Below, piece by piece: positions 6,000-57,071 of a stretch of DNA of 64,000 nucleotides. The DNA is taken from positions 1,922,001-1,986,000 of the forward strand of contig OX337242.1 of assembly GCA_946965045.2 (NCBI GenBank), given 5' to 3'. The notes below the pieces were generated by a model. The model was not told the origin of the DNA. It saw only the letters and a program-made list of their open reading frames with translations, and did not search any database. The position numbers and the translations under genes were made by a program. This DNA is from Epithemia pelagica. Lineage: Eukaryota; Protista; Bacillariophyta. Every line of letters begins with the position of its first letter. Positions within the stretch are counted from its first letter, which is position 1.

Positions 6000-8840
6000 T
6001 AGGGCTCGTTCTCCGGAATTGGAATGGGTAGATCGAGCATGGGCCGAGATGACAGAGGTAAAGGAAAACACATTGGGATAACAATCGTATTCCCCGCGTT
6101 CGGCCAATTCCACCATTTGTTGTAAACATCGCTCTGCTTGTTTGGCTTCATGGCTCCCACTTGGCAAGGCTTGTTTCTTGGATACATCCCGAAACATTGA
6201 TTTCGTCCAGGAATCAATCACGGCATTAAAATCCATTGTGGTGGGTTTCCGATCCACCCGGCCATTTTCCACATGATCGATCCAGTCATGAAAGACGTTG
6301 GTTGTCATGGTTGGGTCTCCTTGCTTGGACCATGATTGCAAACGCATGGCACAGGCATCGGCCAGAAATTCGCGAGACACGGGCTTGCCGGCATCCAAGT
6401 CATGTTGCAGGCCTTGAAACAAACGTTCCACATGAGTGTGACCATTTGTGTGTTTCAACCAGGCACCCATTAATTTGCAGCATATGGAATCCTTTCGTGG
6501 CCCACCATGGTCTTTGTTATTGTCGTCGTCGTCATGGAGTTGGGTATAGAGATCCGTGGCTTGTTGCAAAATGTCGACATCATGATAGGTTCTTCGCACG
6601 TAGGCATTTAGTAGAGAATTGTGACATCGATCGTCGGGTTGAATTTCCATGTCTGCCATGGAATCGTATACCTTTCGGGCTTTGGTCGCACCGTGTTTGT
6701 CCTTGGATTCTCCCCAGGCTCGAATCACAAAATTGAAAATCTGCAGCAAGGAGATGTCAAAAGGAAAAGCAGATTCATCCATCCGATTCCACCATCAGAA
6801 TCGATATGTCAAGTTACGGAACAACCTACAATCCGTATACTAATGAGAACTTACTTGTGGTAGACTGTTCATGGTCGGATTGTCACTCAATGTCACATTC
6901 TCTTGTTTGACTCGTCGACACAAATGATCTAGAATGACTTGACAACGACCGGGGTCCTTGGCACTTTTCCATGCCTGAATCACACGAACATAGCTTTCTC
7001 CATTCGGCTTGGGTAACCCAGTATTTGAGTTGGTCTCTTCCATCCAATGCACTATACGTTCCGCCAACAAGGCTCCTTTGAAGGATGGTGAAAGGCCAGT
7101 CAATCCTTGAAGCAGCAGATTCATGGATTCAATAGTCAAGGGTTTCTCTGGATTCGACTGGGCGTCGACCATTTGCTGAAAACGGACCACCGCTTGTTCC
7201 ATGTGGCTGGCATTAGCTCCCTGTTTCAGGTCCTGCACAAGGCGCTGCAACGCCTCGAAAACAATTCCTCCTTGTTCCTCTGGAGTGCGTTCCACCACTG
7301 GTCGCCTTGCAGTTCGAGGAGTGATGGTTGGTGGGGGTTTGGAGGACGGTGGTGGTGGTGGTGGTAGTGGTGAAGAATTTCCTAGTCTTTGTTTGTTTGT
7401 CACTCTCGCTTGTTGTACGTACGTGTTGTTGTCGGGTGTTTTCACCAGTGACTCCACATGGTGCCGTAATTGCCGCAAGGAGGAGATCTGTGCGCCACGA
7501 TCATTGGTGTTTTGGTAGGCTGCCTCCATGAGTTCAAACATACGGACGGTCGGTTTCCATCGACTGTCTCGTGTGGCCATAAATGACTCGCATACTTCGT
7601 CTACAATGGATCTTGCCAAATGCAGGACTTGGTCGGAGGGTGATTGTGTACCAAAGGACTCGACCAAGGCCCCAAGAACCCTTTCCGCATGCCTTGCGTC
7701 ATAGCGCAACAACGTAGTCGCGATGGATTGTTGTTGTTGTCCTCTCATTTGTTGGTAGAGTTCCAACATGCGAAGTTCACTGTCTCTTGTTTTACCATAC
7801 AGTTCAATCATGTCACAATACAAATCAGGGCTGGGTCGATATTCCTCTGGTTGGGATGCAAATTGGTTCACATGAATGGATTGAAAGTATCGTTCCGCAT
7901 CTGAAATCACGGTATTGGCCGACGATGGATCCATCTCTAATCGTTTACGGCAAAGCTGGAGCAGTTTCTTTATCAGTGGTCCATTGGGGCGATATCTTGT
8001 ATCGGCCTGGTCCATCAAATATTGAAATACTTCGTCTGCTCTCCCATAAAGGTTGTGACTATTCATGTTGATCATTCCCTGTACAATATGCAGATATGCA
8101 TTGGCATACGGAGGTGCCACCAAACCCATGTGAAGATATCGATTCACTTTCTCGAGGATGGACAAGGGTCGCAAATGCTCGAATGTGACAGTCGTCGGAG
8201 TCCTGTCAGGAGGACTGCCCTTCTCATATCCATCCTTCTTGACGGATGTTCCGCTTGTTTCCCTCACAGAATTCATGTATATTGCCCACAATACCAGGAT
8301 TGGATCCAACGTGGAGTGATATGGCAAGGCTTGGTATCCTCCCGTGACCAAGCTTTCGGCGTCATGCACCTCCCATTCTTTTGCAAGACGATCCAAGATC
8401 CATAACCACTCTTCCAATAAGTCTCCCTTCACAATGTCCTTCTTACCACCTGCTTCCTTGGACAGATAATCCCGTGCGTTTACAAAATCATGAGGACCCA
8501 ACGATCCCACCTCGAACGATTGCAGGCGATCTTGGAGCAGCTCATAGACCCAAGATTCGCCGTCATTTTCAAAAAGGGGTGGTGGCAAGGTTTCGTCTGC
8601 CATATTTTCTTCAGTATTTTCAATGGCTACAGCTGGGTTTAGATCTCCTGGTCTGTCGTGTCTTGTCCGTTTAGGCTTTCGGCGGTCCTTTGTCAAACTG
8701 TTGCTTGTATGGGGATTTACAGAGGGCGATTCGTCACTGTATTTTGTGGATCCCGAGACAGGCAAGAAGAATACAGTTAATTTTGCTCCTGGTGTGGCTG
8801 TAATGCATCTCGGGGCGATTCCATATGCTGCCTTACCCAT
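6000..8840 (-). pseudogene. Partial duplicate of the PPR gene at 20092-23595; exon 2 broken by the copia element, 5' end replaced
   Basis: 6000-8736 aligns to 20545-23281 at a constant offset of 14545, including the same intron (6854-6741). Confidence 0.9.
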
Positions 8841-12405: not shown

Positions 12406-13450
12406 TTGCGAATGACCAACTAGATACAAGTTGTGGTTGCTCTCGACTTTCTTAGTTAATGGGCTCAAATGATCTCTCTGATTGATAGGGTAGGACGAGA
12501 TGGTACTGCTTCTATTGTTCAAGCTTGTGGAGAGGATAATGCTGCATAAAATTCCAGGTCGAATGCAGATCAAGTATCAACGCATGCCTGGTAACACATT
12601 CGTATCTCGTAGCCTCTCGACGACCGTCAAAAGGAAGATGTGTTTGTCCGAGGCGAAAAAATTGGCAAAACGCTTTTCTCAACAGAACTGTGAAAATGGG
12701 TTACATGCCAGTGTCTCCCAGAATTCGGCATGGCCAATCGAAAAGACAGAAACTCAAGAGCTTCCCAATCATGCACATAGACCGAGTTCCAGTTCTAGTC
12801 GTAGCAAGAGGGGCCTTGTGAAGCTACTACCTACTACGCAACTAACCACTCCAACTTTAGAATGGCTCATCGTATCCTTCTACTCGCTCCATCACTCATC
12901 AGTCTGAAATCCAAAACTCAACTCGGAACTCGGAGTCCGAAACATAGCACAACCAGGGCTGTGTAGTACGATAGTCCAATTTTCGACGAAGTCCCTTACT
13001 TTGTACTGTACTTCACCGACTTTATGCATTCCCTTAGTATAGTCCCCCCCTCTCTCTCAAGGGACTGCCAGTCCCTCAGTCCATTCCCTATAGTCACTCA
13101 CAACCGACTATAGTCTCTACCGTCATTCCCCCCCCCCCCAGCCTTCAATCGTACTATATTCCCTCTCTGGAGTCCCACCAGTCTCTCGTATTGTACTTTT
13201 AGTCCTAAAGTCAAGTACCTCCAGCCAAATATATAGGCTGTATAGTACAAAATCACTCCTCATCTCCATATGAAACGACTACAACCATGATATCATGCGT
13301 TTATCATTCCAAATCAACACAAGAAAACAGATGAGGATAATCACAACACAGAGGTACGTTACCCATATCTTGGTTGCTTCGCCTCTCTTCAACAATCAAA
13401 CCATCGTCCTCTCTTATCTTGTCTCATACAACGACACGAGGTCGAATCAA

Positions 13451-16400
13451 ATGGAAGGAGTCCAAGATACCGTTTCGACATTGGAAGATCCTTCCAGGAG
13501 GGATCCCCCTTCCTCCAACAAGAACAAATCTTCTTCCAACAAGAACAAGCCACGGCCCTCATCCAGTAAGAAGAAGACTTCCAGTTCAAAGAAGAAAAAG
13601 AAGAAAAAGCCTCCTCCTGCAGGTTCCAACGAATTGAAACGAAAACCCTCTGCACTCGAAGCCGAGAAGAAAATTGTTGAGGAAGAGCTTGCACCAGTTG
13701 TGGAAGCCAAAGATGATTTCTTGGCGAATGAGAAATCTCTTGTTCCTCTTCTTGATTCTCCAAATCCATTATTCTTCGGCCATCCTAGTTGTTCACCGTA
13801 CTGGCGTTGGATCCTTCATGTTGACTGGCCGGTGTTTGAACAATATCTGATCGATAACTCGGATGATATTCCCCAAACCCCCGGCATTCTCAAGCTGATA
13901 AACAACATGAAGACCAAAACCAAAATAGGAGACATGAAGAATCTCAAGTCGGCATTGACTCCCCAAGCCAAGAATAAAGCCATGAAAGAGAAATACTCGA
14001 ATCTTGTCCGTTATGTTGTCATCTGCCCACGCTGTTTTGCGAACAAAGACAAACCACTGGACGAATGTATCCTACTTTGTGGGCTTAACAAAACATCCAA
14101 CATAGCAACTCATATCGGCAAGTACCACAAAGATGTTCAAATTCAAGACGACGCCGATGATCCCTCTCCGATGAAAAGCCAAGGCACGCTAAGCTCCATG
14201 ATCATAAAGGATGCATCCAAATCTACTGCTTCTGCGGAACTAAGGCAGCTCATGTATCGGTTCATCAATGACTGCGCACTACCGGCAATTACGGCCGAGA
14301 AAAAAGAATTCCGAGATCTCATCCGGTACGCAATCAACAACAGTGCTGCTCTCCGCGACACACCGGCAGAGATCATGAGCCGGCGGGAAATTTCCAAACT
14401 TCGTATCTCTTCCTACGAAAGTTTTTTCGGTGTGGCGACGAACCTTATCAATGCCTGTCGCTCTGAATACGAACGATTGTGCTACCAGAAGGTTCCTTTT
14501 ATCTCCGTGTGCCATGATATTTGGCAAGCGAGGGACCATGACGTCCTTGGGGTTACAATAATGTTCATAGACCCTCGCAACTGCGAGGTCTATCGCATCC
14601 CCATTGGTCTTGCAGAATGCAAAGGACACGCAGCAACGGACGTGGCAAACCTAACTGATGTTCTTCTTCTTGGTGTTGGCATCACTACAGGAGATCTGTC
14701 GGCTTCTGTGAATGACAACACGACGGCCGCTGTGTTGGCGGGCAAGTACATAGTGGGCCAAAAGGATAAGACTGGAAAATGTGATATGCACAAGGCTGAA
14801 CTTGTGCTAAAGCACGCCACGGGGTTAGTTCAACGCTACCACAATCGCCAGCTCATGGATTCTAACACGGAGTTTCTTGAGCTGTGGCAAATCTTCAAAC
14901 AATTTGCGTCTTGGTTGACCAGCAAAAAATCTCCAAAGCGAATGAGAAAGTTTCGAGAGGCCTGTATTGCAATGGGAATGAAGATTGTTTCTATTCCACT
15001 CCCAAATGACACTCGAGTTGCAGGACTTATCCTAACAATTCAAGCCTTGCTACGATGCAAATTTGTCATGGATGCCTACTCTACTCTGACTGGTTTCCGG
15101 AGTGACCCAAAGTTCAAAAAGCTATATCCAGAGGAAAAGGAATGGAAGTTACTTGCTCAGTACGAGGGAATCCTCGCTCCCTTGAAACAAGTTTCCATGT
15201 CTTTACAATCTGATGAACCAGGAGCAAGTTCCGCGGCCCTGCTTGAAATCTATTGCGCTTATTTTCAAGCAACAACTATGCGCAGTGACAGCAAAGAGTA
15301 TGGTGGTGTCTCCTGCTTGAATGTGTCTAGTGGAGCCGAGACTCAATGGGACGCTCGTGATACCATGGACGATCTAGACAGACTGCGCGATCCGATTCTC
15401 TACAAGGATTTAGAGGCTGGACCACGCCACCTAATTCGCCGGATTATCGCAGAGTACAAGCATTACTTATTCCATCGTGACGAAGATGGAATAAAAGCTG
15501 TTTGTGCCAATCCTCTATTGGGAAATGTATACGAGAATATGTTCGTGAATTTCGGCGTTTTCGATCAAGACACCGTCAAAGAGTGTCGTAGGATCATCAT
15601 CAAAGACATGGTCGCCAAATTCAGCAACAAGAGTGTCTCTCAGATTGGACTTGCGCTCTCTAAACAAGGGGCCACGGGGAGAGAAGGTGATGACATTGAG
15701 AATGTTGAAGAACAGGCGATGTCCCCTTCCAGAAAAACTATTCGGCACAAAACCCGTGATGTATTTGCGAACATGAGGCGCTCGCATGACCTACAACAAC
15801 AAGCGTTACTGCATCTTAGTGGCAAGGCATCCAACGCTGCCTCTGAAAACGAAATGGTGATGGCCTTACAGAAAGCTTGTACATCATGCTACGACGAATT
15901 TTGCGAACATTGCAAGGGTCACATAGACAACCATTGGGATCAAATGATGGAAGACTATGGAACTCCAGCCTTCTATAAGGCTCGCGACCGCTGGAACGAT
16001 AATCAGAAGAGAGAGTTTGCCATGAATTGCAAGAATTGAAATTACTTAGAGGTTGGCAAGTACTTTGACTTGATGAAATGGTGGCGTCTCCATTCCTCAA
16101 AATTCTCCTACCTATACCCAAGTGCTATCATTTGGTTGGCGAAGCCGTCGACAAACGCCTTCCAAGAGCGGATTTTCTCCATGGGATCATGGATGACTCA
16201 AAATAAACTAATGGGGAGCATGTCAAAGAAAACCAACGAAATGAGAACAATGGACATGTTAAATCGGGACCAAGTCACGACTATTTTGAAGAACGAAAAG
16301 AAAATAGAGAAAGGAGAAGGTATTAGTGTGTCGTACGTACCTGTCGTGTCCAAAACAAGAAAGAGTACCGCCGACAATAAACAAGATAAGAATTTACGAA

Positions 16401-17503
16401 GGACGGCTCTCAAGGAAGCCGCTAATGGATTCGCAACCTACGGAAAGTCGTCCAAGTTCAACAACAATGTTATGACAGATCCAAGTGTGACCATGACATT
16501 TTTCCAAAATACGGAGGAAGGGGATGGAGCATCGACATTGTCCGGCTATGACCCAGACAAAGACATTGATGCGTCTGGTGAGGACAAGGTTGGGAAAGAG
16601 ACCGAGATTGGAACTGGGACCACCCAACAAGACGATGAAGTTGGTGCCAAAGTGGCCGCCGTGGACGACGAAGCACCACCAAATCACCGGGTGAGAGTGG
16701 CTAACCGAATTGTTTATGTAACCGTTCCGTCGAAGCATGAAGAAGACTCAGATATAGATTCTGTGTGCTTTTCGGAAAAGGATGAGGAAAGCGATACTAT
16801 GGTAGATACAATCATCGATGATATCTTGCAAGCACCTACGGACGACAGCAATCCAACAAACGATGGAAAGGAAGTCATGACTGTGGATGTCTCGGATGAC
16901 GAGGACGGCGATAAGAAACCGCCAGCAAAGCCATCCAAAAAAGACAGCAATGATGAAAAAAAGAAACGTGCTACCAAGAAACGTAAACGGTCCATGATTC
17001 TGCAGCCAAGGCGGCTTTCCCCCCCACGAAAAGCAAAGGCAGCAGCGGCAGCTGCAGCTGCAGCTAATACACTTGGGAAGGGAACAACCCCTCCATCTGC
17101 CAAACTTGTCGGAAATAAGAGGCGAAAAATTATTCGAAAGTCACCATTTTCGTTAAAGGCAGTCATTGGTGAGTCAAATGATGACGACAAGGGCGATGAC
17201 GATAAGGACAATGAGGAAGAAAAGAACGACGGTCTGGGCAATGAAAATGGAGCAGTATTAGAAGGAGAAGAGTCACAAGATTTGTTGGGAGACAAAGATG
17301 ATCAGCATGACCAAGAGGACGACCAAGAAGACGACCAAGAGGACGATGAGGACGATAAAATTGACGAAGAAAGTGGTGAGGATAGTGGCATAGAAAGTGA
17401 TGCAGAGGAAAATGATCTCAATGACGGTGAGGATGGTGACGCCGATCAAGAGGAGGAAGACAACGATGAGGATGCATCGTCCGCCGAAGCAGAATTTCAA
17501 TGA
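13451..17503 (+). pseudogene. hAT transposase with one in-frame TGA (16037-16039) and a long acidic C-terminal tail
   Basis: BED-like finger CPRC...H...H; catalytic-type motifs VCHDIW, VNDNTT, CDMH and NAFQERIFS. ORFs 13295-16039 and 16070-17503 share a frame and are colinear with the intact copy at 52426-56376. Confidence 0.9.
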
Positions 17504-17565
17504 ACAAGATCAGAAAGTTGACCAAAATCTACGAGAGAGAAAGAATTAGTAATGCATATCATAAT

Positions 17566-19380
17566 TTATCTATAAGTATTGATCATTGATTTGACCTTCT
17601 GGAATACGTCGTCGTGGAGGTGGAGTGTTTTTCCAAGTCGAGACAGTAAATTAGTGCGTAAATCAATGGTAGCAGAATGCTGCCCTAGAGCACCGAATAG
17701 TGGATTGATAAGAGACCATTTATCCATTGGAACCCATGCTTCCAAATGTTTTGATGTCGCTAAGCCGCTGAGTTTTGGAGGCACCCAACCCATCTTGTGT
17801 GCCCAGCGAATAACATGTATGTCTGAAGGTATACCGTCGACACGTCCGAATGCCGCCTCCAATATTATGCATGCAGTCTTATACCCAATGCCATCGAGGG
17901 TCATCAACTCGTGGATTGTAATGTTGTTGGGAATTATCCCATTGTGGCGCTGTAGAAAGTAGTCGGCCGCATTTACAATGCGCTCGGCGTTGACGTTATA
18001 TCGTCCAAGTTCCGATATTAGGGAGCACATAGCATCCATGCCGTACTTGTTGGCGATCTCCGACACAGCATCGGCAGACGTCATTCCACAAGCAAAAAGA
18101 CGGGGCATTACGGAACTGAGTTGTAAATCTGAAGTGCTTGAACTCATACAGATCGTCATCAAGACCATGAATGGCCGATCTGAAAGAGGATTGTCCGCGT
18201 AATTGTTAATCCATGACTCCCAATCATCCCGAGGAGCCACGATTCCAAAGTGTTTCAACTCTTGGTGAAACATGACCAGTTGTCCGAGTTCTGTCAGTCA
18301 ATGGTCTAGAACAGTTGCAGGAATGGGAGGGACTTTCACATGGAGATCGGATGGACGGAGTTTCTTGAGTTTGGGTGGCATGCCAGGCATGTGGCGATCT
18401 TCGTCGTCTTTTTGTTTATATTTGATGGTTTTTTTGGAACGTGAAATCGATTGAAGAAATAATGATATAATGGTGTTGCGAGAACAAGTGGAATACGAAT
18501 GTGTTGGATGCTGGGTATGCTGGGTAGCTTTCTTCGGTGGAGATTTAAGAAGATTCTTCTTTTTGGGAGATTTGTTCACGGCAGGTGGATTGTCTTTTTT
18601 TTCGTCGGCATGTAGGGGAGGACAGTGTATCTTGTCGTATAGCTGCGTCAATTGGGCAATATAAGGGGTGATGCAACTTGGAACACAGTCCTCTTGATCG
18701 GATTCTTCACTGTTACATTCGCATAAAATATATTCGTTGACTAGTTGTTGAGGTTGTTGTGTGCAATGGAATCCAGTTGATGTGTGCATCATCCAGGACA
18801 GAATGATAGATTGGGATGAAACATTCGGACATTTTTGTTTTACACGATGGGTGTTTCTCATACATTCGTGAAAATGAGGGCATTGATCAATCTGTAGCGT
18901 GGGTGTACATTGAACAGTAAGTGTAAGACTCTTGCAATGATCAGGCATGAAGGGTTGAAACTCATGATCTGATGAATTCGGAACTTGCGGAGATGGACCG
19001 TGTAGATGAGTAATGACAATGCCAGCAATGATTGAAAGCTTGTCTTCATACTCCAAGGTGAACAATCTGCAAGCGTGAGTGTTGGACTTGCTCGTGTTTT
19101 CTTCTTTGCAAGAAATGGACCCAGAATTCTGAATTAACCATGCAACAGTAAATCGTTTCACCCATAGATGAAGTTGGCACCGAAGAAGGTCTTTGGGAGA
19201 TTGCTCTTGGATATATTTTTTCGTGTCTTCGAAGTAAGCAAAATTCGACTCCAGAATGAACTTCAGATTACATCGTGAAGAGAAATGAAGGTATTTGCGA
19301 GAAGTTGATGGTTCCATATACCTTGTTCCTTGAGTTGTGGAGGAATGGTTTGGGGAAGGAAAGTTGAGTGTGGGAGACAC
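17566..19380 (-). pseudogene. Cys/His-rich domain plus endonuclease III-like HhH-GPD DNA glycosylase; one in-frame TGA (18298-18300)
   Basis: HhH motif LDGIGYKTA and IPSDIHV. ORFs 18298-19380 and 17566-18273 share a frame and are colinear with 50533-52380. Confidence 0.88.
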
Positions 19381-19539
19381 TCTTGTTCGATGGTTGATGG
19401 AGTGAGAGTGAGGTGCGAGGGTGTGAGGTGTGTTGCTGCTGATAGCGTTGTTGTGATGGGCGTGGGTCTCATGTGGGTCTCATGTACGTATAGTAGCGTG
19501 GTGGAGTATACATGGATTTCGTACTGTGAAGTCATGACT

Positions 19540-19810
19540 TAGGGACTATAGTACCATAGTACATGAAGATTATGAAAGGGACTATAGTCCACATAGTATA
19601 GTCAAATGTTGTGTATTTCGATGTACTATAGTCATCGGTGATAGTCTATGGGTGAGTGGAATTGGGACTATCAGTCAAGGGACTATTCCATGTGTGGTGG
19701 CTAGGGTGAACTATAGTCGTTTAGTACAGTCTACCGTGTTTGTAAATGGGATTAGTAGTCTCTTAGTATAGTACCATTAGAGTGTGGAATGGAGTGTAGT
19801 AACTATGGTC
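19540..19810. repeat. Subterminal array of GACTATAGT(C/A)-like palindromic motifs (also about 13035-13250 and both ends of copy 2)
   Basis: GACTATAGTC at 13106, 19580 and 50226; GACTATAGTA at 19544 and 50349; many degenerate variants. Confidence 0.75.
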
Positions 19811-20091
19811 TAGTCAGGTACATATCGTAGATGGACTGAAAGTCATGTAGTCTAGTCTCGACATGTTTGGGTGATACTTCACAGCTCTGGTTGCAGATGG
19901 CGCGCGAATCAGAAGCATGTCACAAAGAGTCGCCGAGGAATCGCTGGAAAATCGCACAAATTATGACATAGGGTATAGCAGGTAGACTATCTGATGGGAA
20001 GAAAAAATATGGTGTTGGCATACCCTTGGGATCCTTTGCGTCTACATTACTCTACCTAGTACTCAATTGTTGGTTCCAATGCCCACTCTTC

Positions 20092-40680: not shown

Positions 40681-43600
40681 ATGAGCGAAAGTAGCTTCGA
40701 AGAGGAGCCCCCAAAGCCTGGCGTTACGACGCAGTCCATCGCAGGTAGTTCCAATCCTGGCTTCGCCGGTTACGGAAGCACATCCAATTCGGATGACAAA
40801 ATTGTGGCCAAGGCAGATGACCAAGCGGTGAAGCTATCCAAACTTGCTGTGTTGCTCGTCATCGGCATAACTGCTATTGCATTTGCATCAGTCACATATG
40901 TTTTTACGTTTAATGAAGAAACAAGCGATTTTGAGCTTCAGTGAGTGTGGGTTGTTGCCTTTCGGATAGACAGATGTGAAAGTCTAGACTAACGTTTGTG
41001 GTGCTCTGATGATGTTGTCCACAGATTCGAAGATTTTGGTTACCAGGTTAGTGCTGTAGCACGCCAAGAAGCTGTTGCTGTCTTCGGTCTTCTCGCATAC
41101 AAAGCCATAAATGTTGCATCTTACAGCCTGGACAGAAATGTGGAGTGGCCCTTTTTGACCATGCCACATTTCGAGGAACGGGGAAATACGAACAATCGGT
41201 TTTCGAGGGCTCTACAAATGTCTCTTGTCGCCTTGGTTTCCAAAGAGAAAAAGGCCATGTGGGAAGACTATGCATGGACCAACCAACAGTGGGTGCAAGA
41301 TGGAGTGAACTCATCATCTGATCTCCACGTAGACTTTCTCGGACCCGACTTGAAGGTACCAGAGATTACACGCAGCGTGTACCGATTCGTGGGGGAGAAC
41401 GGCACGAGCGGTGACACAGTACCTGAAGACGGTTCTGGAGGAGTAGATTTTGGCCCAGGGGCATACGGTGTTGTATGGCAGCAGGCACCAGCACCGCATG
41501 ATCCTTCGATCATCAACTTCAACCTGTTGTCTCATCCTGTTTTTGCCCGTGTGTACCGGACCATGTGGGAATCCTCCCAAGCTGTACTCTCCGAGGTACT
41601 TAACCTTGGCTTTCTTTATGAAGGAGCTGTTCGGGATGAAATTACGAATCCTCATAGTTTCCTTATGCAACCGATTTATCCCTCGTTGGCAAATGGCAAT
41701 GAGAAGATCGATCGAGACAGCCTGTTGGGTTTCATTGTGGGGGTGCTTCCGTGGGACACTTATTTCCTAAACTTGCTTCCCGGACACATCAAGGGTATCA
41801 TTGTCGTTTTGCACAACTCTTGTGGTGAAGACTTTACCTACCGCCTCGATGGACAAGACGCTACCTATCTGGGCGAAGGTGACCTTCATGACACAAAGTA
41901 TAACCACCTCGAAATCACCTCTCCATTTGCCCCAACGGTGTCTGTGGAGGATTCATCTACTTCACTCGACAAGTGTGATTACGACTTGCGCATTTACCCA
42001 TCCCCCTCCTTCGAAGATGGCTACCGCACCAGCAGACCGTTGTTTTATGCAGTTGTCGTATTGTGCTTGTTTGTGTTCACTGCCGGTAAGAACATATACA
42101 AACCTGCACTCAAACCAAAGTGAAGTTCACTCAGACGTTTTATGTTTTTTTTTGTATTCATAGCGGTTTTTGTCTTGTATGACCTAATGGTTCAGCGCAG
42201 AAACTCCAAAGTTGTGTCCAAGGCCAAGAAAACCAATGCGATCGTGTCAGCCCTCTTCCCTAGTAATGTTCGCGACCGACTTCTGAGAGATGCCGAAGAG
42301 CAAGCTGCGATTGCAGAAAGGGACAAAAAGAAGAAGTTCGCTTTCGGAGCTGCCCAGAAAGAACAACTGAAAACATTCCTCGACGAAGATGGAGCACATG
42401 CCGTAGCTCATCCCTTCGGCACAAAGCCCATTGCCGACCTTTTCGTAAGCATAGTCGTACATCGTTGCCATAAGAAATATCACCCGGAGCCTCACTCATG
42501 CCTTTTTCGTGCTCTTCAGCCGAGTGCCACTGTCATGTTTGCAGATATTGTTGGTTTTACAGCGTGGAGCTCAGTTCGCGAACCAACACAAGTATTCACG
42601 TTGCTCGAAACCGTTTACCATTCGTTTGATATGATTGCCAAGCGACGACGCGTCTTCAAGGTCGAAACAGTAGGAGATTGCTACGTAGCCGTGGCTGGTC
42701 TTCCAGATCCACAACCAGATCATGCAGTTGTTATGGCTCGATTTGCCAAGGATTGTCTCGTAGAAATGGCTCACGTTTCCAAGAAATTGGAAGTTCAGTT
42801 GGGTCCTGACACAGGTGATTTGGCCATGAGGTTCGGAATGCACTCTGGTAGGTCAAATAGATTGGTTGTTGGTGTGCATAGAGCGTTTGGCTTTGCTGTG
42901 TCTCAACAGCGTTGTGTTTTCATTTTGTTAACATAGGACCTGTTACTGCCGGCGTTCTGCGTGGTGACAAGTCAAGATTTCAGTTGTTTGGCGATACAGT
43001 AAACACAGCGGCTCGAATTGAATCGTCCGGAGAGCGGAACCGTATCCACATGTCGGAGGAAACGGCAAAACTGTTGGTGGCTGCCGGAAAGGGACATTGG
43101 GTTCTGCAGAGAACAGATCTTGTTCAAGCCAAGGGCAAAGGAGCTTTGGAGACATTCTGGTTGGACCCTCAACTAAGGTCCTCACCATCGGTAAAATCTG
43201 GTTCGAAAGACGCGCCGGATTCACTTCCTCAGTTCAGCAAGGCGGACTTGACGCCTCGAATGCCAACCATTGATGAAAAGGCACAACGACTCATTGGCTG
43301 GAACGTGGATGTCCTCGGTCGATTAATGAAACGTATCATCGCACGAAGAAACGCCTTTTTGAAACTTGGAAGGGTCCGAAGCAGCAAAGTCATGCAAAGT
43401 CTCCCGTCGGTTTCTGAACCAGAGAATGAGAATGCCACCATGGTTCTTGACGAGGTGAAGGAAATCATTCATCTTCCGGCTTTCGACGCTGTTGTGAATG
43501 AAAACCAAGAGGATCCTGACAAAATCATTTTGAGCGAAGAAGTCACGGATAAGTTGCTCAAATATATTGGTACCATATCAGAAATGTACCGAGACAATCC

Positions 43601-44651
43601 TTTCCACAACTTTGAGCATGCCAGTCATGTGACCATGTCCGTGGTCAAGCTCCTTTCACGAATCATCACGGCCGATTCGCTGATGGAACAACAGAAGGAC
43701 AAGCAAGCTGGAGATGCTCTTTCATTGTTGCATGACTTTACGTTTGGAATTACCTCCGATCCCTTGACTCAGTTTGCCTGTGTCTTTGCAGCCTTGATTC
43801 ATGACGTGGACCATGTCGGTGTGCCAAACACTCAATTGGTCAAGGAAAAGTCCCATTTGGCCGAGATTTACAAGAACAAGAGTGTAGCGGAACAGAATTC
43901 CGTGGACTTGTCGTGGAGTCTCTTTATGGACGCCGAGTTTGAGTGCTTGCGACAAGTCATTTGTCCCACCGCAGACGAAATGAAGCGGTTCCGACAGCTC
44001 GTTGTGAATTCTGTCATGGCCACGGATATCATGGACAAAGATCTCAAGCTTCTTCGCAATCAGCGATGGGACAAGGCCTTTTCCGAAGAGACTAGCACGG
44101 ATTCGCCCTCGGACGTGGTGAATCGAAAAGCCACGATTGTGATTGAGCATTTAATCCAGGCTTCGGATGTCGCCCACACGATGCAGCATTGGCACATTTA
44201 CCGCAGATGGAACGAACGATTATTCCATGAGCTGTTCCTTGCCTATCACAATGGACGTGCTGAAAAGAACCCTGCCGAGTTCTGGTACAAGGGTGAAATG
44301 GGCTTTTTCGACTTTTACATCATCCCTTTGGCCAAAAAGCTCAAAGATTGTGGTGTCTTCGGTGTTTCCAGCGACGAATACCTGAACTACGCCGAGAAGA
44401 ATCGTCGCGAATGGGAAGCCAAGGGCCAGGAGATTGTGGAAAGCATGATCAACAAGTTCAATAGTCAACTTCAGATTGAAGAAGAAGAAGAAAGTCAGCA
44501 TCATCTAAAGCCAGACTTTAAGGCCGTCGAACCACAATCAGAACAAGCTACATCACCGTACACTCAACGACGATTGTCTCCAGAGCCAAACGCGACCAAC
44601 CTGGGGGTGAGGAATGGGGCCTCTCCAAATCGAAATGCCTCCATCGTGTAA
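40681..44651 (+). CDS. Membrane-bound class III (guanylate-type) nucleotide cyclase fused to a cyclic-nucleotide phosphodiesterase; several introns
   Basis: Two TM segments around an extracellular domain; VMFADIVGFT, KVETVGDCY and QLFGDTVNTAARIES (cyclase); PFHNFEHASHV, IHDVDH and IQASDVAH (PDE). Confidence 0.92.
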
Positions 44652-49853: not shown

Positions 49854-50532
49854 TTTAAAAGCGATCCTTTAGCTCAAACCGTGCGGGCCGGGCCGCATGA
49901 TTTGGTTTTGAAAAACAAATCCAAAAGCCTTTTCGAATCCTGTCCCCCGGCCCTGCCTGCGTTCCCCCAAGCTACTTCATTTTTTCAATACTAAAAATAT
50001 TTAAATGTAGGACGTGCTTCTTGTGTTCACTATTTGAATTGAATCGCCTTAAAAGCAGGGTTGTGTAGTAATGACATAATGAATTTTCTATGACTAATTG
50101 ACTATTAATCACGATCTTAGCATCTAGTTACTTTACTAGATACTATCAAGTACCCCACACTTCACCTCACTGACGTACTGAATTACTCTTAGTCATTTCA
50201 CCAACTGATAACTACTTTACTTATTGACTATAGTCCTCCTCCATATTAGAGGTTACTTTACTACAGAACTAAAGTCATACATCTCTTAGTAAGTGTATTT
50301 ACTACCATTGACTAATCACCGTCATGTCATCCTATGACTATACTTTATGACTATAGTACCTCGTCTCACTGAGTAATGATTTACTAAATTTCTCTCCATA
50401 GTCATGACTATTGATGACTAAGTCACCACTATAGAGTCTTACGACATATTACATACCACACAGAGAAAATGGACAGCGACCTCTTCCCCCCTTGCCTTAC
50501 CATTTCACAGCAGCGACCCACAGCACCAAATC

Positions 50533-52380
50533 ATGAACTTTCTTGAATGTAAATCCGAATGCAACATCAAGTACATCCTTCATTGTAATGCATCGTATTA
50601 CAAAGCAATTCAAGAGTACCTTGTCAGTCCCCACGAAGGCATCTCCCGCTTAGAACTGCTTACTTGGGTTAAACGGCATACCATTGCATGGCTCATTCGA
50701 CACCAAGGGCACATTGTATTTGAAGACGACAATACACAAAGCTCTACAACACACGCTTGCGTACTGTCTGATTTAAAATTCACACACCGCCTGGAACTGT
50801 GCTGCTGCATTGTTGTTCGGTGTATCTACGACCATCCGACCACAATTTCTCCATCAGACTTCCAAGAACACATTCTATCTCCCTCCGTGTCGAATGATTC
50901 GAGTCTTCTTTTCCTTGTGGTTCGATGCACTCCAAAGATAACAATTAACCGGTCTCCCCTTTTCCAGCAATGTTTAGATTACACTCGACAATGCAAAGAG
51001 GAGTTCCCGACTGCCAGTGTTCAAGCCATTCTTCTTTCATGGTTGAATCGCACTTCGGTTGTTTTTCACTGCAAACAATCGGCACAAAACTTCACCAACG
51101 AATACGTTATTCGGCAATGCTGTGAAGAAGACTCGTACAATGAAGAATGTATTCCAATCTGCATATCCCCATATCTACAAGAAATGGAAATTCAATACAA
51201 CCATTCTAACTCTCCACCCAAAGCTTCTGTATCCACAGAATCGCATGAATGTCACTGTACTTCCCCAAGTACGCTTTTCCGTAAAAAAGACCCACCAAAT
51301 GATTCTCCTGGCCCGGCCCCAAACGACTCTCCTAATGCAAATCACGAATTGGTTACTTCCCGATCCAAAAAAAGGAAAACAAGTTACCCGACAAGAAAAA
51401 GGATAACAAACGAATCATCAATCCGAAATCACATTCATTCTCCTGTACATTCCTATGCTACACGATCAAGGAACAATCAAATCACCAAGATTATAATGCT
51501 GGCCTCCAGATCAAAAACAAAAATAGAATATCCTGCAAGTAATCACCAGCCAGGCACTCCTCCAAAACTCAAAGACATCAGTCCGTCGTCATTGGAAGTT
51601 CATGTTCCCCCCATTCCAACAACAATCAAAGAAAGACGAATCGAGGAAATCAACCAGATGATCAAATTTCACCAACAATTGAAATTATCTGGTTTGGTGT
51701 CGCAACGAGACAACTGGGAATCCTGGATTGACAATCATGTTAACCAGCCATTTGCCGACCGACCATTCATGGTACTAATGACAATCTGCATGAGTTCAAG
51801 CACTTCCGATTTGCAATTGAGCTCAATCATGCCACGGATTTTTGCTTGTGGCATGATTTCTGCAACGAGTGTGATTGACATTGCTCAACAATTTGGCATG
51901 AACACAATGTGTTCCCTTCTTTCCGAATCTGGTAGGTTCTATGCGAACACGGAACGCATTGTTAATGCTGCGGACTACTTCATCCAAAGGCATAATGGAG
52001 TAATCCCAAGAGACATAACAATCCACGAACTGACGACGCTACATGGCATTGGCTACAAGACGGCGTGCATTATTTTAGAGGCTGCCTTTGGACGCGTTGA
52101 TGGAATCCCCGCGGATATTCATGTAATCAAATGGTCTGCTTTTCTCGGCTGGACCTTCCCGAAACATACTGGACTTACGGTCTCCAAGTATCTTGAGGCC
52201 TGGGTCCCTCACAATCAATGGTCACTCGTGAATCCTCTTTTTGGGGCGCTTGGACAACATTCAAACACAATTGTTGGCCGTGGTATTCTATTGACAAGAC
52301 TTGGAGAAACCCTTCACTTGGATGCCGATATGTTCCAAAAGGTCAAGACTATGATTAATACGTATCGTCCGTTAAAATAA
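50533..52380 (+). CDS. Cys/His-rich N-terminal domain fused to an endonuclease III-like HhH-GPD DNA glycosylase/AP lyase (615 aa)
   Basis: PFMVLMTICMSSSTSD (equivalent to Nth LLxxxLSxQT.D), HhH LHGIGYKTA with catalytic Lys, IPADIHV with catalytic Asp; no Cys cluster after FGALGQH. Confidence 0.9.
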   Translation: MNFLECKSECNIKYILHCNASYYKAIQEYLVSPHEGISRLELLTWVKRHTIAWLIRHQGHIVFEDDNTQSSTTHACVLSDLKFTHRLELCCCIVVRCIYDHPTTISPSDFQEHILSPSVSNDSSLLFLVVRCTPKITINRSPLFQQCLDYTRQCKEEFPTASVQAILLSWLNRTSVVFHCKQSAQNFTNEYVIRQCCEEDSYNEECIPICISPYLQEMEIQYNHSNSPPKASVSTESHECHCTSPSTLFRKKDPPNDSPGPAPNDSPNANHELVTSRSKKRKTSYPTRKRITNESSIRNHIHSPVHSYATRSRNNQITKIIMLASRSKTKIEYPASNHQPGTPPKLKDISPSSLEVHVPPIPTTIKERRIEEINQMIKFHQQLKLSGLVSQRDNWESWIDNHVNQPFADRPFMVLMTICMSSSTSDLQLSSIMPRIFACGMISATSVIDIAQQFGMNTMCSLLSESGRFYANTERIVNAADYFIQRHNGVIPRDITIHELTTLHGIGYKTACIILEAAFGRVDGIPADIHVIKWSAFLGWTFPKHTGLTVSKYLEAWVPHNQWSLVNPLFGALGQHSNTIVGRGILLTRLGETLHLDADMFQKVKTMINTYRPLK

Positions 52381-52425
52381 TTAAATAGTTGCTTCCATAT
52401 CACATGTATTCTTTCTTGACATTTA

Positions 52426-55400
52426 CTACGCTGACGAGTCTCCATCGTCGTCAGTATTTTCGAATGCGGATTCACCATTGTCTTCTCCTTCCTCACTTCC
52501 CTCCCTGCTCTCGTTCTCTCCGTCGCTTACTTCATTCCTGTCTTGTACTTGTCTGTCTTTCTCCCCTGTGTTGGCTGTTTCCAAACTCGCAGCCAAGGAT
52601 CGACTGGTTTTCTTCCCCAAATGCCCTTGGCTATCCATGGATTTTGAGGTCTTCGCTTTTTTCTGTCGTGGCGATTTTCTAATTCCCTGTCGGGGAACTA
52701 TCTTTGATTGCTTCCTTTTCTTCGTACTGGGCTCTGCATTCTTGTTCTTCACAGACTTTTTCGTCCTTTCACTTTCTTTGGGCCTTCCACTTTCTTTGGG
52801 CGGAGTCTCTATAACGACAATTTCTTCTTCATCTCCTTCTTCGACAGCCACAACAGTATTGTTGTCTTTGTCTCTGTCCAGGTCGTCGTCGTACTCATCC
52901 TCTACTTCCTTCCGGTCCATGTCAACCTGTGGATTGTCGATCCCTTTCTTCATGAGACATCGCAACATCTCGTCACTGTCTTCCTCGGGTTCTGACTGAT
53001 CATCCGACTCATCTTCCGAGTCTTCTTCATGACGTGCTTTAATGCGCACATGTACGATACGGTTTGCAACAAATTCTCTCGGTTTCGTGGGACGGGCTGC
53101 TTTTTTCTTACCGTCGGACAGTCCTTGGACGGCCTCTGTTGCATCTTTGTCATTTACTGTGTCCACACCCTTGCTGGGTGGGTTTCCTACCGGAGGATCA
53201 CCGGCATTGTCATCATCTTCTTCTCCATCTTCTTCTCCTTTGAGAATAACTCTACCAGACTCGTCCCGTTCTGTCCCGGCGAGAACCTTTCCTGAGCTGT
53301 CCCGTTCAGGAAAGGTTTCCAGAAACGACATTGTCACGGCGGGATCTTCCATCAAGTGGGTTTCATGGTCAAACGATAGTTCGTAGGATGCCAACCCATT
53401 GGCATTCTCTCTAACAGCCGACAGTTGAACTTGTTTTTGCTGAGTAGCTGCTTCCAAGCCAGGACTATCCTTGGCTTTCGGAGGCTGAACATAAGAGTTA
53501 CTAACCGACACTCCATTCGCAATGTCAATCTCAGTCTTCTTGATTTCTTCCAACAAGGACCGGTTGACACATTCCATTGTGCGCATCTCGTTGGTTTTCT
53601 TGTGGGCCCTTCTCATTAACTTGTTCTGGTGCATCCATGTACCAATTGAGAAAATGCGTTCTTGGAAAGCATTGGTGGCCGGCTTCGCTAGCCATATGAT
53701 GGCACTTGGGTACAAGTAGGGGAACATCATGGAATGGGCCCTCCACCAACCAAGGAGATCGAAGTACTTGCCAATCTCCAGATAGTTCCTATTGACACAA
53801 TTCTCTTTGAACTCTTCAGTTTCATCATCGTCCCACTTCTTCGAAACTTTCTCAAACTCCTCCGTACTATATTGTCGAATTATACTTTCCCAATGATTGT
53901 CAATATGATTTTCGCAGTTCTTCCGAAAATCGTCATAGCAGGTAGTGCATGTCTTCTTAAGGGCTCGCATTTTCTCCTGATCAGAGGCGGCGTCCGAAGC
54001 TCTTCCACTCAAGTGCAGGAGCACCTGTTGCTGCAAGTCATGGGACTTGCGCATGCTGGCGAAAACATTCTTGGTCTTGCGCTTAGTTGTTTTGTTATTC
54101 GTCTGTGAGTCGTCTTCAGCAGTCAAATTGAAAGACCGTGTCGCAGGTTTGTTGGCAGGTTTGTTTGCTGTGTTGGATTGGGCGGCCATTGCTGCACCGA
54201 TCGTAGAGACCCGCGTGTTGCTGAACTTGTCCACCATGTCCTGAATAATTATTCTTCGACCTTCCTTGACAGTGTCCATGTTGTAAATACCGAAATTGAC
54301 AAACATGTTTTCGTAGATGTTTGCCAATAGAGGATTGCAACAAACAGCCTTTAGTCCATCGTGATCACGGTGGACAAGGTAGTGCTTATATTCAGATATA
54401 ATGCGACGGACCAGTAGTCGGGGTCCTGGCAAAAGGTCATCAAATTCAACTGTGTCTCGAAAGGTGTCTAGATCATCTATCGAAAGCCGAGCATCCCATT
54501 GATCCGGACTGCCTTTTGCTAGTTTGATGCAAGAAACTCCACTATTTTCTCCATTTGGAGGAAGGCTCATGGTTGTGGCTTGAAAGTATGAACAGAAAAT
54601 CTCGAGTAAAGCGGCCGAGCTTGCACCAGGAGCATCTGATTGAAGTGTCATCGCCACTTGTTTCAGTGGCGATAGAATACCCTCGTACTGTGACAATAAT
54701 TGCCAATCCTCTTCGCTGGGATATAGTTTGGCAAATTTGGGATCACTCCCAGCGGCAAGAAGTGCGTATTGATCCATTGCCCACTTCAGCCGAGCAAGGG
54801 TTTCCAACGAGAGAACAATACCACCAATCCTTGTATCGTTTGGTAGGGGAATCTTGATCACTTGACATCCATAGGATTCACAGTTTTCTCGGAAATTTTG
54901 AAACCGACGAGGTGCTTTGCTACTCATCAACCATGCTGAAAACTTCTTGAATATAGACCAGAATTCAATAAAGGAGGGATTAGAATCCATCAGAATCCGG
55001 TTTTGGTAGCGTTGCACGAGACCGGTAGCATGCTTCAGCACTAACTCTGCCTTGTGCATGTCACATTTGCCAGCACGGTCGGTCCCGACGATGTACTTTC
55101 CGGCAAGTACAGCAGCCGTTGTGTTGTCGTTCACTGAGGCACAGAGATCCTTTTTTGTGAGTGTCACACTTAGAAGCAGGGTCTCGGTGAGATTTGCCAC
55201 ATCGGTTGCTGCATGGCCCTCGCAATCCGCCAGCCCAATGGGAATGCGATATATTTTGCAGTTCCTTGGATCGATGAACATTACTGTAACGCCTAAGACA
55301 TCATGGTCTTTGGCCTGCCAGATGTCATGGCAGACCGTGACAAATGGAATGTCTTGTAGGCAAAGACGGTTGTATTCCGCACGCACCCGCGTAATGAGAC

Positions 55401-56376
55401 CAGAGACAACGTCAAAGAAATCTTGATAGGAGTCCAAGCGAATTTTTGTTATCTGCCGTCTGCTCATAATTTCTGCTGAAGAATCTTTCAGCGCGGGAGC
55501 ATTTTTAATAGCGAAACGGATAAGGTTGCGGAACTGAGGTTTCTCCACTGTGATCGCTGGTAGGCAGCAATCATTGACAAACTGGTAGATCAGCTTCTGT
55601 AGTTGCTGAGATGATTGTGATTTCGTAGTGGTCTTTACTCGGAAAGAAGACAGAGTTGATTGGTTGCTTGGTGCTGTCTCATCCTCAAATACAACGTCCT
55701 TGTGATGGTTTTTTCGATGAGTCATGATATTGGACGTCCTCCCAGTTTTATTGCCACACCGCAATGCAGATTGATCCAAAGACTTTTCGTTGGAATAAAA
55801 GCATAAGGGGCAAAGAACAATCCACCGGCTGACTTTCTGATACTTCTCCACAAAGGCGGCATTCTTGCTTTTTGTTGATGTGGCGTTTTCGATCTTGTCA
55901 TTTGGACCAAGAAGTGTAGTAGAAGCAAAATCCTGTATCAGTTTAATGAAGCCGGAATATTGGGGGATATTGCCTTCGTTCTCGAAAATATACTTCTCGA
56001 GTTTCATCCAGTCGATGTGTAGGACCCACTTCCAGTATGGAGAGCAGTTGGACTCAAATATCAGGGGATGGGGACGTTCCAGAAGAGGTACAAGCTGCTT
56101 CTCTTGCTGATATTGCTCGTCCCTGGCTTGCTTGGCTGGAGCCCTTTCCTTCTCAACAATCTCTTTCCGGGCTTCAAGTGCTGATGGCTTCATCTTGATC
56201 GTTGTGGGAGTGGTCTTTTTGGAAGAGGAAGAGGAAGGCTTCTTGGATGAAGACGATGACTTCTTCTTTGAACCTTTGGTCTTTGATGGAGGAGTCTTCT
56301 TGTTGGATGTCTTGTCAGTGGCCTGGGTGGGAAGAGAATCCATCTTGTCCGAGGGATCTCCCATAGGTGCAGACAT
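52426..56376 (-). CDS. hAT transposase (1316 aa) with BED-like finger and acidic tail
   Basis: CPLC...H...H; VCHDIW, VNDNTT, CDMH, LPNDTR and WW...P.TNAFQERIFS. Confidence 0.93.
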   Translation of the reverse strand: MSAPMGDPSDKMDSLPTQATDKTSNKKTPPSKTKGSKKKSSSSSKKPSSSSSKKTTPTTIKMKPSALEARKEIVEKERAPAKQARDEQYQQEKQLVPLLERPHPLIFESNCSPYWKWVLHIDWMKLEKYIFENEGNIPQYSGFIKLIQDFASTTLLGPNDKIENATSTKSKNAAFVEKYQKVSRWIVLCPLCFYSNEKSLDQSALRCGNKTGRTSNIMTHRKNHHKDVVFEDETAPSNQSTLSSFRVKTTTKSQSSQQLQKLIYQFVNDCCLPAITVEKPQFRNLIRFAIKNAPALKDSSAEIMSRRQITKIRLDSYQDFFDVVSGLITRVRAEYNRLCLQDIPFVTVCHDIWQAKDHDVLGVTVMFIDPRNCKIYRIPIGLADCEGHAATDVANLTETLLLSVTLTKKDLCASVNDNTTAAVLAGKYIVGTDRAGKCDMHKAELVLKHATGLVQRYQNRILMDSNPSFIEFWSIFKKFSAWLMSSKAPRRFQNFRENCESYGCQVIKIPLPNDTRIGGIVLSLETLARLKWAMDQYALLAAGSDPKFAKLYPSEEDWQLLSQYEGILSPLKQVAMTLQSDAPGASSAALLEIFCSYFQATTMSLPPNGENSGVSCIKLAKGSPDQWDARLSIDDLDTFRDTVEFDDLLPGPRLLVRRIISEYKHYLVHRDHDGLKAVCCNPLLANIYENMFVNFGIYNMDTVKEGRRIIIQDMVDKFSNTRVSTIGAAMAAQSNTANKPANKPATRSFNLTAEDDSQTNNKTTKRKTKNVFASMRKSHDLQQQVLLHLSGRASDAASDQEKMRALKKTCTTCYDDFRKNCENHIDNHWESIIRQYSTEEFEKVSKKWDDDETEEFKENCVNRNYLEIGKYFDLLGWWRAHSMMFPYLYPSAIIWLAKPATNAFQERIFSIGTWMHQNKLMRRAHKKTNEMRTMECVNRSLLEEIKKTEIDIANGVSVSNSYVQPPKAKDSPGLEAATQQKQVQLSAVRENANGLASYELSFDHETHLMEDPAVTMSFLETFPERDSSGKVLAGTERDESGRVILKGEEDGEEDDDNAGDPPVGNPPSKGVDTVNDKDATEAVQGLSDGKKKAARPTKPREFVANRIVHVRIKARHEEDSEDESDDQSEPEEDSDEMLRCLMKKGIDNPQVDMDRKEVEDEYDDDLDRDKDNNTVVAVEEGDEEEIVVIETPPKESGRPKESERTKKSVKNKNAEPSTKKRKQSKIVPRQGIRKSPRQKKAKTSKSMDSQGHLGKKTSRSLAASLETANTGEKDRQVQDRNEVSDGENESREGSEEGEDNGESAFENTDDDGDSSA

Positions 56377-57071
56377 CTCCCATCGAATACACTGTGCTGA
56401 GGAGGAAGATTGCTGTTGGATTGTTGAAGGATGAGACTCAAAAGATCTGTCATTATACAGAGAAGCAGAGGTGCATAGGTACGATGAGGATCATCCTCAT
56501 CTGTTTTGTTTGGAATTTTGGTGAATTGTGTGACAGAATGCGATTGTAGTCGTACTTTGTCGATTGGATGAGGAGTGACTTTGTACTACAGAGTCGATAT
56601 TACCCATGTCAGGGTATTGACTTGGAGACTAATAGTAAGGAGATCCGTAAGTGAGTTACTTACTAAGAGACTAATAGTACGTCTGAAGAATGAGGGGTGA
56701 CTGACTGTGATGACTGTAGTCGGTGGGGTGAGAAGGCAGTGATTGATTGGCAGACTGAAAGTAACTGGGGAACATATACTTACTGATTTTACTACATGAC
56801 TTCATAGTTAGTCATAGTAAATCATATAGTCATGTATTTTGGCAAATGTGTGATTATTGTACTACACAACCCTGCTTAAAAGGCGAAGGACGGCTGAGTT
56901 CAGTATCCAGTATATTCAGTAGAGACTCGACCCGTAACTTGTAGAGCTCTGACTCGCCGCGTAACTTGTCGACGCGAGGCTGATCCAGGAAGTCATTGGT
57001 GAGCATGCGACACGAAGCAACATAGCGTAGGTAGTCCCAGCCCTCTAGCTTAGGCGAGATAGGTGTATCTC

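Follow-up and report, generated by a model that had tools for sequence, protein, structure and literature searches.

A hAT DNA transposon of the diatom Epithemia pelagica carries, inside its terminal inverted repeats (TIRs), a transposase gene and a second gene that encodes a predicted DNA glycosylase of the endonuclease III (Nth)/NTHL1 type. The element occupies positions 50056-56874 of a 64,000-nucleotide stretch of contig OX337242.1 (assembly GCA_946965045.2, positions 1,922,001 to 1,986,000 of the forward strand), hereafter the window, and is referred to as copy 2; a defective relative, copy 1, lies at 12954-19889. Comparison across the family indicates that the glycosylase gene is an old and selected part of the element, co-inherited since the origin of the family. 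As judged from sequence, its most likely function is to counter silencing by excising bases from the DNA of the element itself, a preference held tentatively and at a little less than an even chance.

Element anatomy and hAT membership

Copy 2 is, almost beyond doubt, an autonomous diatom hAT DNA transposon with two genes in its mobile unit. Its parts, in window coordinates, are:

50048-50055, no strand: left 8-bp target-site duplication (TSD), CTTAAAAG, the same as 56875-56882 and fitting the hAT target consensus nTnnnnAn
50056-50070, forward strand: left TIR, CAGGGTTGTGTAGTA, perfect reverse complement of 56860-56874
50071-50532, no strand: left subterminal region, in which the motifs ATGACTA/ATAGTCA recur; presumed sites of protein binding and putative glycosylase promoter
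50533-52380, forward strand: open reading frame (ORF) of the glycosylase protein, 615 amino acids (aa), intronless
50533-51222, forward strand: N-terminal domain, residues 1-230, fast-evolving (AlphaFold model and alignment)
51223-51456, forward strand: linker, residues ~231-308, disordered, basic and of low complexity
51457-52380, forward strand: conserved family-specific extension (HSYxTRSRN ... RHxPG), then the Nth/NTHL1-like HhH-GPD domain, residues 309-615
52057-52059, forward strand: catalytic Lys509, by alignment
52114-52116, forward strand: catalytic Asp528, by alignment
52426-56376, reverse strand: hAT transposase ORF, 1316 aa, intronless, Pfam PF05699
56377-56859, no strand: right subterminal region bearing the short repeats of the left one, putative transposase promoter
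56860-56874, reverse strand: right TIR, a perfect 15-bp inverted match to the left TIR
56875-56882, no strand: right 8-bp TSD, CTTAAAAG

The two genes are convergent, with 45 bp separating the stop codons of the 615-aa and 1316-aa ORFs, and the 7-mers ATGACTA/ATAGTCA have 7-9 occurrences in the two 450-bp ends of the element and 0 in its interior. The 15-bp TIRs and the CTTAAAAG duplication confirm the first-pass annotation of this DNA, which had placed the glycosylase gene inside the TIRs and described copy 2 as bounded by a perfect 8-bp TSD; the common order of TIR, transposase, convergent glycosylase and TIR that it had reported for both elements of the window also holds, with the two elements in opposite orientations. 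The empty target site reconstructed for copy 2 (50044-50055 joined to 56875-56886) reads TCGCCTTAAAAGGCGA, a 7+2+7 near-palindrome, and it is because this site is nearly palindromic that the repeat finder stretched the arms of copy 2 to 27 nt.

Genomic contexts were compared in 13 fetched loci (L001-L013) together with copies 1 (W1) and 2 (W2) of the window. A Pfam match, a series of ordered motifs, 8-bp TSDs and TIRs starting with CAG together place the family in the hAT superfamily. The 1316-aa transposase matches Dimer_Tnp_hAT (PF05699) with 32.5 bits against a cut-off of 21.4 (E-value (E) 7.7e-8), and the same match is present in precomputed form on most of its relatives, 20 of which were recovered by a transposase search at 35-99% identity. 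Across six diverged family transposases (31-74% identical) the conserved motifs are kept in hAT order, namely HDIW (D351), NDNT (D417), CDMH and the hATC region WW...QERIFS (E907), and those bearing D351, D417 and E907 may, by pattern only, be the counterparts of Hermes D180, D248 and E572. The same six proteins conserve a CxxC...HxxxxH finger at residues 189-225, and Pfam zf-BED gave no match to the 1316-aa protein at E 0.01. Perfect and mutually different 8-bp TSDs flank five elements (copy 2, L001, L003, L006 and L007), each with both genes inside, with T at position 2 in four of the five and A at position 7 likewise in four, as in the hAT consensus, and all complete elements end in a 15-bp TIR of the form CAG[AG]G.TG.G.AGTA. 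A phmmer comparison of the transposase with solved hAT structures returned no match; the lineage is diverged.

Copy 1 is an older, defective element of a different sublineage with the same two-gene layout:

12954-19889, reverse strand: copy 1
13295-17503, forward strand: transposase, with an in-frame TGA at 16037-16039
19317-17566, reverse strand: glycosylase, with an in-frame TGA at 18298-18300

Its proteins share 49% (glycosylase) and 51% (transposase) identity with those of copy 2. The TIRs of copy 1 agree at 13 of 15 positions, and comparison of its flanks (AGCACAAC and GTTGCAGA) gave no target duplication. Each gene contains exactly one in-frame TGA, and both of these lie in alignment columns where relatives use Arg codons (CGA, CGT, CGG or AGA). 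The two TGAs are compatible with C-to-T change at CpG and may be a methylation footprint, one made up of only two events.

Distribution, co-inheritance and selection of the glycosylase gene

Searched exhaustively with HMMER, 1.84 billion representatives yielded 35 clusters (50% identity) at E <1e-30, and about 45 precede a sharp fall to generic Nth proteins near E 1e-13. Most members of the glycosylase family come from the long-contig assembly ERZ21939226, which may represent the genome of the window itself, with further members in Logan run SRR23447908, metagenome assembly ERZ27267782 and the sediment metagenomes of PRJEB13118; a scan of JGI metagenomes with the family alignment produced 600 pattern matches and no confirmed relative.

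When the co-occurrence of the two genes was checked across the family, as the first-pass annotation had proposed, both were found, and convergent, in 11 of 11 assessable contexts (W1, W2, L001, L003-L008, L011 and L013). Among these, L011 is a complete element from an unrelated sediment metagenome, and L013, which carries the most distant transposase relative found (34% identity), still has both genes. The count leaves out L002, which ends before any transposase could appear, and L009, L010 and L012, which are too short; these four loci do not speak against co-occurrence. The 6798-bp copies L006 and L007 differ at 3 bases (99.96% identical) and sit at different sites, with unrelated flanks and different TSDs, and an intact glycosylase-bearing element has therefore transposed very recently.

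Maximum-likelihood trees of six elements gave the same topology for glycosylase and transposase, (L008,((L005,L006),(W2,(L001,W1)))), with support of 94-100 in both and similar branch lengths. A tree that also takes in 99 other Nth-like representatives unites 25 family members in a single clade (SH-aLRT support 99) whose stem measures 0.71 substitutions per site. The nearest relatives outside the family are named only as 'endonuclease III' from metagenomes.

Between lineages the proportion of synonymous differences (pS) is about 0.8, which is saturated, and that of non-synonymous differences (pN) is 0.24-0.5; for the two window copies pS is 0.79, and with synonymous sites saturated no ratio of non-synonymous to synonymous rates (dN/dS) is obtainable. 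The sole unsaturated pair, L005-L006, gives a glycosylase dN/dS of 0.195. Three DNA runs, with contigs of up to 509 kb and Hi-C-like GATC junctions, contain a sibling of copy 2 that is about 99.7% identical, and against this sibling the glycosylase ORF shows 5 synonymous changes and 1 non-synonymous change (a second non-synonymous change is seen in one sample); by our own binomial estimate, at least 5 of 6 changes being synonymous has P ~0.005 when a quarter of sites are taken as synonymous. Over longer times, full-length glycosylase ORFs have been kept in lineages with 31-59% protein identity.

The unbroken co-occurrence, the congruent trees, the near-invariant catalytic residues described below and the mostly synonymous recent changes all argue that the glycosylase is an integral and selected component. 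The first-pass annotation had favoured long selection over a one-off capture, and the data side with it: a cargo confined to two copies and evolving at dN/dS near 1 is excluded by the many copies and by the L005-L006 value. A recent capture of host Nth1 is excluded as well, because the family is monophyletic, has a long stem and has lost the iron-sulphur (Fe-S) cluster of Nth enzymes.

Several further features were seen in individual members. The transposase of copy 2 ends in a long, acidic, low-complexity C-terminal tail (52426-53400, residues ~990-1316) that differs from the ~99.7% identical sibling by 10 non-synonymous changes and 1 synonymous change, against 1 non-synonymous and 3 synonymous changes in the core; the tail is under relaxed or diversifying selection. 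In L002, a Copia-type retrotransposon (L002:11764-17451; RVT_2, a 1895-aa ORF and flanking repeated small ORFs) has inserted immediately downstream of the glycosylase gene, at the place expected for the transposase. The element in L003 (L003:4204-15542) is an 11.3-kb member with the perfect TSD CTCACCAA. Two more ORFs lie upstream of its glycosylase gene, one for a piggyBac-type transposase (PF13843, 4739-6916) and one for a further N-terminal domain standing by itself (7398-8474, 29% identical). These extra ORFs may represent nested insertions or an additional N-domain gene.

Accessory protein: domains, proposed function and alternatives

The description of the accessory protein as an HhH-GPD glycosylase in the first-pass annotation stands on its sequence and fold matches to NTHL1 and falters at Pfam, where HhH-GPD is marginal (27 bits for a copy 1 fragment) and the intact 615-aa protein of copy 2 matches no family at E 0.01, the family having diverged too far for the HhH-GPD model to recognise this member. 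The assignment therefore rests on comparisons with the Protein Data Bank (PDB), NCBIfam and structures. Residues 406-577 align to human NTHL1 at E 8e-13 (phmmer against the PDB), and a profile of the family C-terminal domain searched against solved structures gave NTHL1 at E 4e-21, bacterial endonuclease III at about 1e-15, OGG1 at 8e-4 and MIG (1kea) only at 0.2, with no match to MBD4 at E up to 1. An AlphaFold model of the 615-aa protein, made with 30 family sequences, has a mean predicted local distance difference test (pLDDT) score of 82.8, and its best fold match is NTHL1 (7rdt; Foldseek E 8e-8, template modelling (TM) score 0.71 normalised by target).

The active site is predicted to be intact. 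K509, in the helix-hairpin-helix hairpin GIGYKTA, pairs in the alignment with the Lys of GVGPKMA in NTHL1, and both this residue and D528, in GIPADIHV, are kept in at least 90% of 30 members, as are the hairpin GIGYKTA and the loop GIPxDxHV as a whole, in proteins that are otherwise 28-50% identical. The Lys and Asp together form what appears to be the signature of a bifunctional glycosylase/apurinic-apyrimidinic (AP) lyase, and the conserved Lys argues against a monofunctional enzyme of the MBD4/MIG type; no MBD domain was detected by Pfam. The four-Cys Fe-S loop is absent, the tails after Q575 holding 0-2 Cys in 27 of the 27 members that have a tail, and none of the 30 members matches Pfam EndIII_4Fe-2S or the DME-related Pfam families. 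Against the NCBIfam nth equivalog (TIGR01083) the 615-aa protein scores 59 bits and four members 59-79, with a cut-off of 211.7. With the cluster lost and the equivalog score below cut-off, the protein appears to be Nth-like without being an Nth orthologue.

The N-terminal part of the protein evolves far faster, with 13-36% identity between members as against 54-72% for the catalytic domain. Modelled alone with AlphaFold, residues 1-230 reach a pLDDT of 87 and a predicted TM score of 0.78, and model and alignment together resolve them into a pair of beta-beta-alpha-alpha-beta modules that resemble each other and each contain an invariant Trp (W53 and W170). The linker that follows (residues 230-308) has pLDDT <50 and is alignable only poorly across the family. 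Searches for the fold of the N-terminal domain gave nothing significant: the best E was 0.2 with Foldseek against the PDB and 0.19 against AlphaFold Database clusters, where the sole hint was a weak DUF6824 match at residues 145-230; the best Z in the VIA wide search was 5.0, under the stated noise level of 7-8; and Atlas fold comparison gave TM scores of at most 0.31. An Atlas feature search scored SAND/TDBD-type clusters at 0.59, which is far under significance and serves as a lead only. A zinc-binding domain built on Cys and His is unsupported, as C76 is the only such residue that at least 90% of members keep; W53 and W170, by contrast, do not vary.

The subterminal 7-mer repeats also differ from lineage to lineage. 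A conserved catalytic domain, a fast-evolving N-terminal domain and lineage-specific repeats are consistent with the pattern expected of lineage-specific targeting. In some lineages (L001, W1 and others) the two ends (outermost 450 bp) differ in the family of short repeats that they bear; L001, for instance, has TAGACTA-type repeats at the end next to the glycosylase and AAGTAC-type repeats at the end next to the transposase. Two proteins might bind the two ends in such elements.

In the function that we favour, the accessory protein would be an active bifunctional DNA glycosylase/AP lyase that serves the element by acting on the DNA of the element itself. Its substrate would be a base imposed by the host or linked to silencing, 5-methylcytosine (5mC) or a derivative, and the excised site would pass to host base-excision repair, so that the ends and promoters of the element would be kept free of methylation and able to transpose. 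Recognition of the subterminal repeats peculiar to each lineage would fall to the variable N-terminal domain, and the element would in effect bring its own demethylase, whereas the plant Spm protein TnpA must recruit host ROS1/DML glycosylases. A stricter form of this proposal, a self-targeting demethylase in which the N-terminal domain reads the lineage-specific repeats and the cluster-less, Nth-derived glycosylase excises 5mC or a silencing-linked base only at its own ends, is conceivable and, on balance, doubtful. In heterologous systems a hAT transposase is sufficient by itself for transposition, and selection to mend occasional spontaneous lesions in one element would, on our own argument, be about as weak as the mutation rate; because the transposase is self-sufficient and lesion-repair selection weak, a role in interaction with the host better explains the keeping of a 1.8-kb gene. 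The observed/expected ratio of CpG is 0.76-0.84 inside elements and 0.90-0.97 in their flanks in four of five comparisons, which is compatible with methylation of the elements. In a model diatom, loss of DNMT5a derepresses young transposable elements (PMC9998398).

A number of observations weigh against a base-excision anti-silencing role. The nearest solved relatives, NTHL1 and endonuclease III, excise oxidised pyrimidines and not 5mC, and excision of 5mC is, to our knowledge, documented only for the plant DME/ROS1 family. The diatom family lacks the Fe-S cluster and accessory domains of DME/ROS1, its C-terminal profile gave no match to ROS1/DME in the PDB at E up to 1, and no ROS1/DME chain is among the Foldseek matches listed for the glycosylase model. 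The CpG depletion is modest, is accompanied by lower G+C and is absent in L003. Lineage-specific subterminal repeats would in any case be expected for transposase binding and do not single out the N-terminal domain.

One alternative is a canonical repair enzyme, an Nth-like glycosylase for oxidised or deaminated pyrimidines that would guard the DNA of the element from mutational decay or boost host base-excision capacity so that carriers fare better. The closest solved relatives of the protein are NTHL1 and endonuclease III, the Lys/Asp pair of bifunctional Nth enzymes is retained, and the two TGAs of copy 1, in Arg-codon columns, are damage of the kind such repair would prevent. However, a benefit near the mutation rate to one 7-kb element is, again by our own argument, too small to hold a gene of this size over so long a time, the host should already possess NTH1, an enzyme acting in trans leaves the fast-evolving N-terminal domain unexplained, and the family stands well apart from Nth orthologues and no longer has the Fe-S cluster; canonical repair is rated as unlikely. 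Strict linkage to the transposase, with which the gene co-diverges, and a convergent internal position kept in 11 of 11 contexts could instead point to an accessory factor of transposition, in which the glycosylase/AP lyase would nick or process donor or target DNA, for example by stimulating homologous repair that puts the element back at the donor site once it has been excised, or by marking the ends for the transposase. AP-lyase chemistry is established to yield single-strand breaks in Lys-bearing HhH-GPD enzymes. This role is quite unlikely, given that the characterised hAT transposases (Hermes, Ac, Tol2 and TcBuster) are established to need no partner, that hAT chemistry requires no base-excision step and that the gene is lacking from other hAT lineages.

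Two further alternatives dispense with catalysis or with function altogether. The HhH-GPD fold could be merely the DNA-binding module of a regulator or inhibitor of transposition, as the two-domain architecture with its novel N-terminal domain, the sequence-independent DNA binding of HhH motifs and the loss of the Fe-S cluster would allow; retention of the Lys, the Asp, GIGYKTA and GIPxDxHV in at least 90% of 30 members is unexpected for a dead enzyme, and we give this idea little credence. That the gene is a functionless passenger, a host fragment captured once and carried without selection, is very improbable, and the conservation data already contradict it. Capture of host fragments by DNA transposons does occur, and the glycosylase of copy 1 has a nonsense codon, but full-length ORFs persist at 31-59% protein identity, the glycosylase tree is congruent with that of the transposase, and selection is visible both in the recent changes (5 synonymous to 1 non-synonymous) and in the L005-L006 dN/dS of 0.195.

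Neighbouring features and comparison with known systems

Elsewhere in the window, 42912-44651 encodes a guanylate/adenylate cyclase catalytic domain fused to a cyclic-nucleotide phosphodiesterase domain, whose nearest Atlas clusters are from diatoms (score 0.97), which places the host among the diatoms, as the first-pass annotation had assumed. Another transposable element is represented at 3467-5503 by an ORF for a Copia-type reverse transcriptase (RVT_2, E 1.6e-32).

A hAT transposon is in itself ordinary, and epigenetic cargo borne by transposons is already known; a conserved DNA glycosylase as cargo was not found in the searchable literature. The first-pass annotation knew of no hAT with a glycosylase, and a search of full-text literature likewise turned up neither a hAT nor any other transposon with a glycosylase gene, a search whose scope did not extend to Repbase and Dfam. 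Transposons are known to fight silencing by binding proteins (VANC, TnpA) or by TET dioxygenases in fungi, and base-excision demethylation has so far been a speciality of plant hosts. Under the stricter, self-targeting proposal, excision of 5mC would have arisen independently of plant DME/ROS1, and the family would include the first transposon to be armed against silencing with a base-excision enzyme. A hAT family of a diatom that is diversified, was active recently and has kept such an enzyme since its origin offers a directly testable example of a transposon equipped for base excision, and possibly a second evolutionary route to 5mC excision; it also bears on the control of transposons by DNA methylation in diatoms, ecologically dominant algae whose epigenetics is little explored. 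The two-domain architecture, a variable putative targeting module joined to a glycosylase, is potentially useful for targeted base excision or demethylation.

Among enzymes, endonuclease III and NTHL1 are the best matches in sequence and fold, sharing the HhH motif, the Gly/Pro-rich loop and the catalytic Lys and Asp. Unlike them, the diatom protein has no [4Fe-4S] cluster, has an added N-terminal region of 300 aa and a family-specific extension, and falls in a separate clade. DEMETER and ROS1 are also bifunctional HhH-GPD enzymes with Lys and Asp, and their excision of 5mC is the activity proposed for the diatom protein, which however has neither their Fe-S cluster nor their split catalytic domain nor a C-terminal RRM-type domain, and shows no detectable specific similarity to them.

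Among transposons, the closest parallels are fungal DNA transposons, including hAT7 of Puccinia, that carry TET/JBP genes (Kojima 2025, PMC12730594; KDZ elements). In these, as in the diatom element, an enzyme that reverses a modification is the second gene inside the TIRs, some of the elements are hAT, and the presumed purpose is anti-methylation. They differ in having a dioxygenase, a fungal host and a 7-bp TSD, where the diatom element has a glycosylase and an 8-bp TSD; moreover, fungal PU-type TET genes have moved often between transposon superfamilies, whereas the diatom cargo co-diverges with one transposase lineage. The VANC proteins of Arabidopsis VANDAL (MULE) elements are sequence-specific anti-silencers encoded by transposable elements (PMC5735166), and they resemble the accessory protein in being fast-evolving, in being encoded beside a transposase and in the lineage-specific short repeats of the non-coding parts of their elements (PMC5735166, PMC10398659). 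VANC matches the short repeats of its own family and causes loss of methylation from that family (PMC5735166, PMC10398659). In contrast to the diatom protein, which has a complete predicted glycosylase/lyase site and putative binding, VANC has no known catalytic domain and demethylates indirectly. Anti-silencing by the Spm/CACTA protein TnpA requires the host glycosylases ROS1, DML2 and DML3 (bioRxiv 10.64898/2026.08.24.746577), and thus passes through HhH-GPD base-excision demethylation, as is proposed for the diatom element. In Spm, however, the glycosylases are recruited host genes, whereas the diatom element encodes its own.

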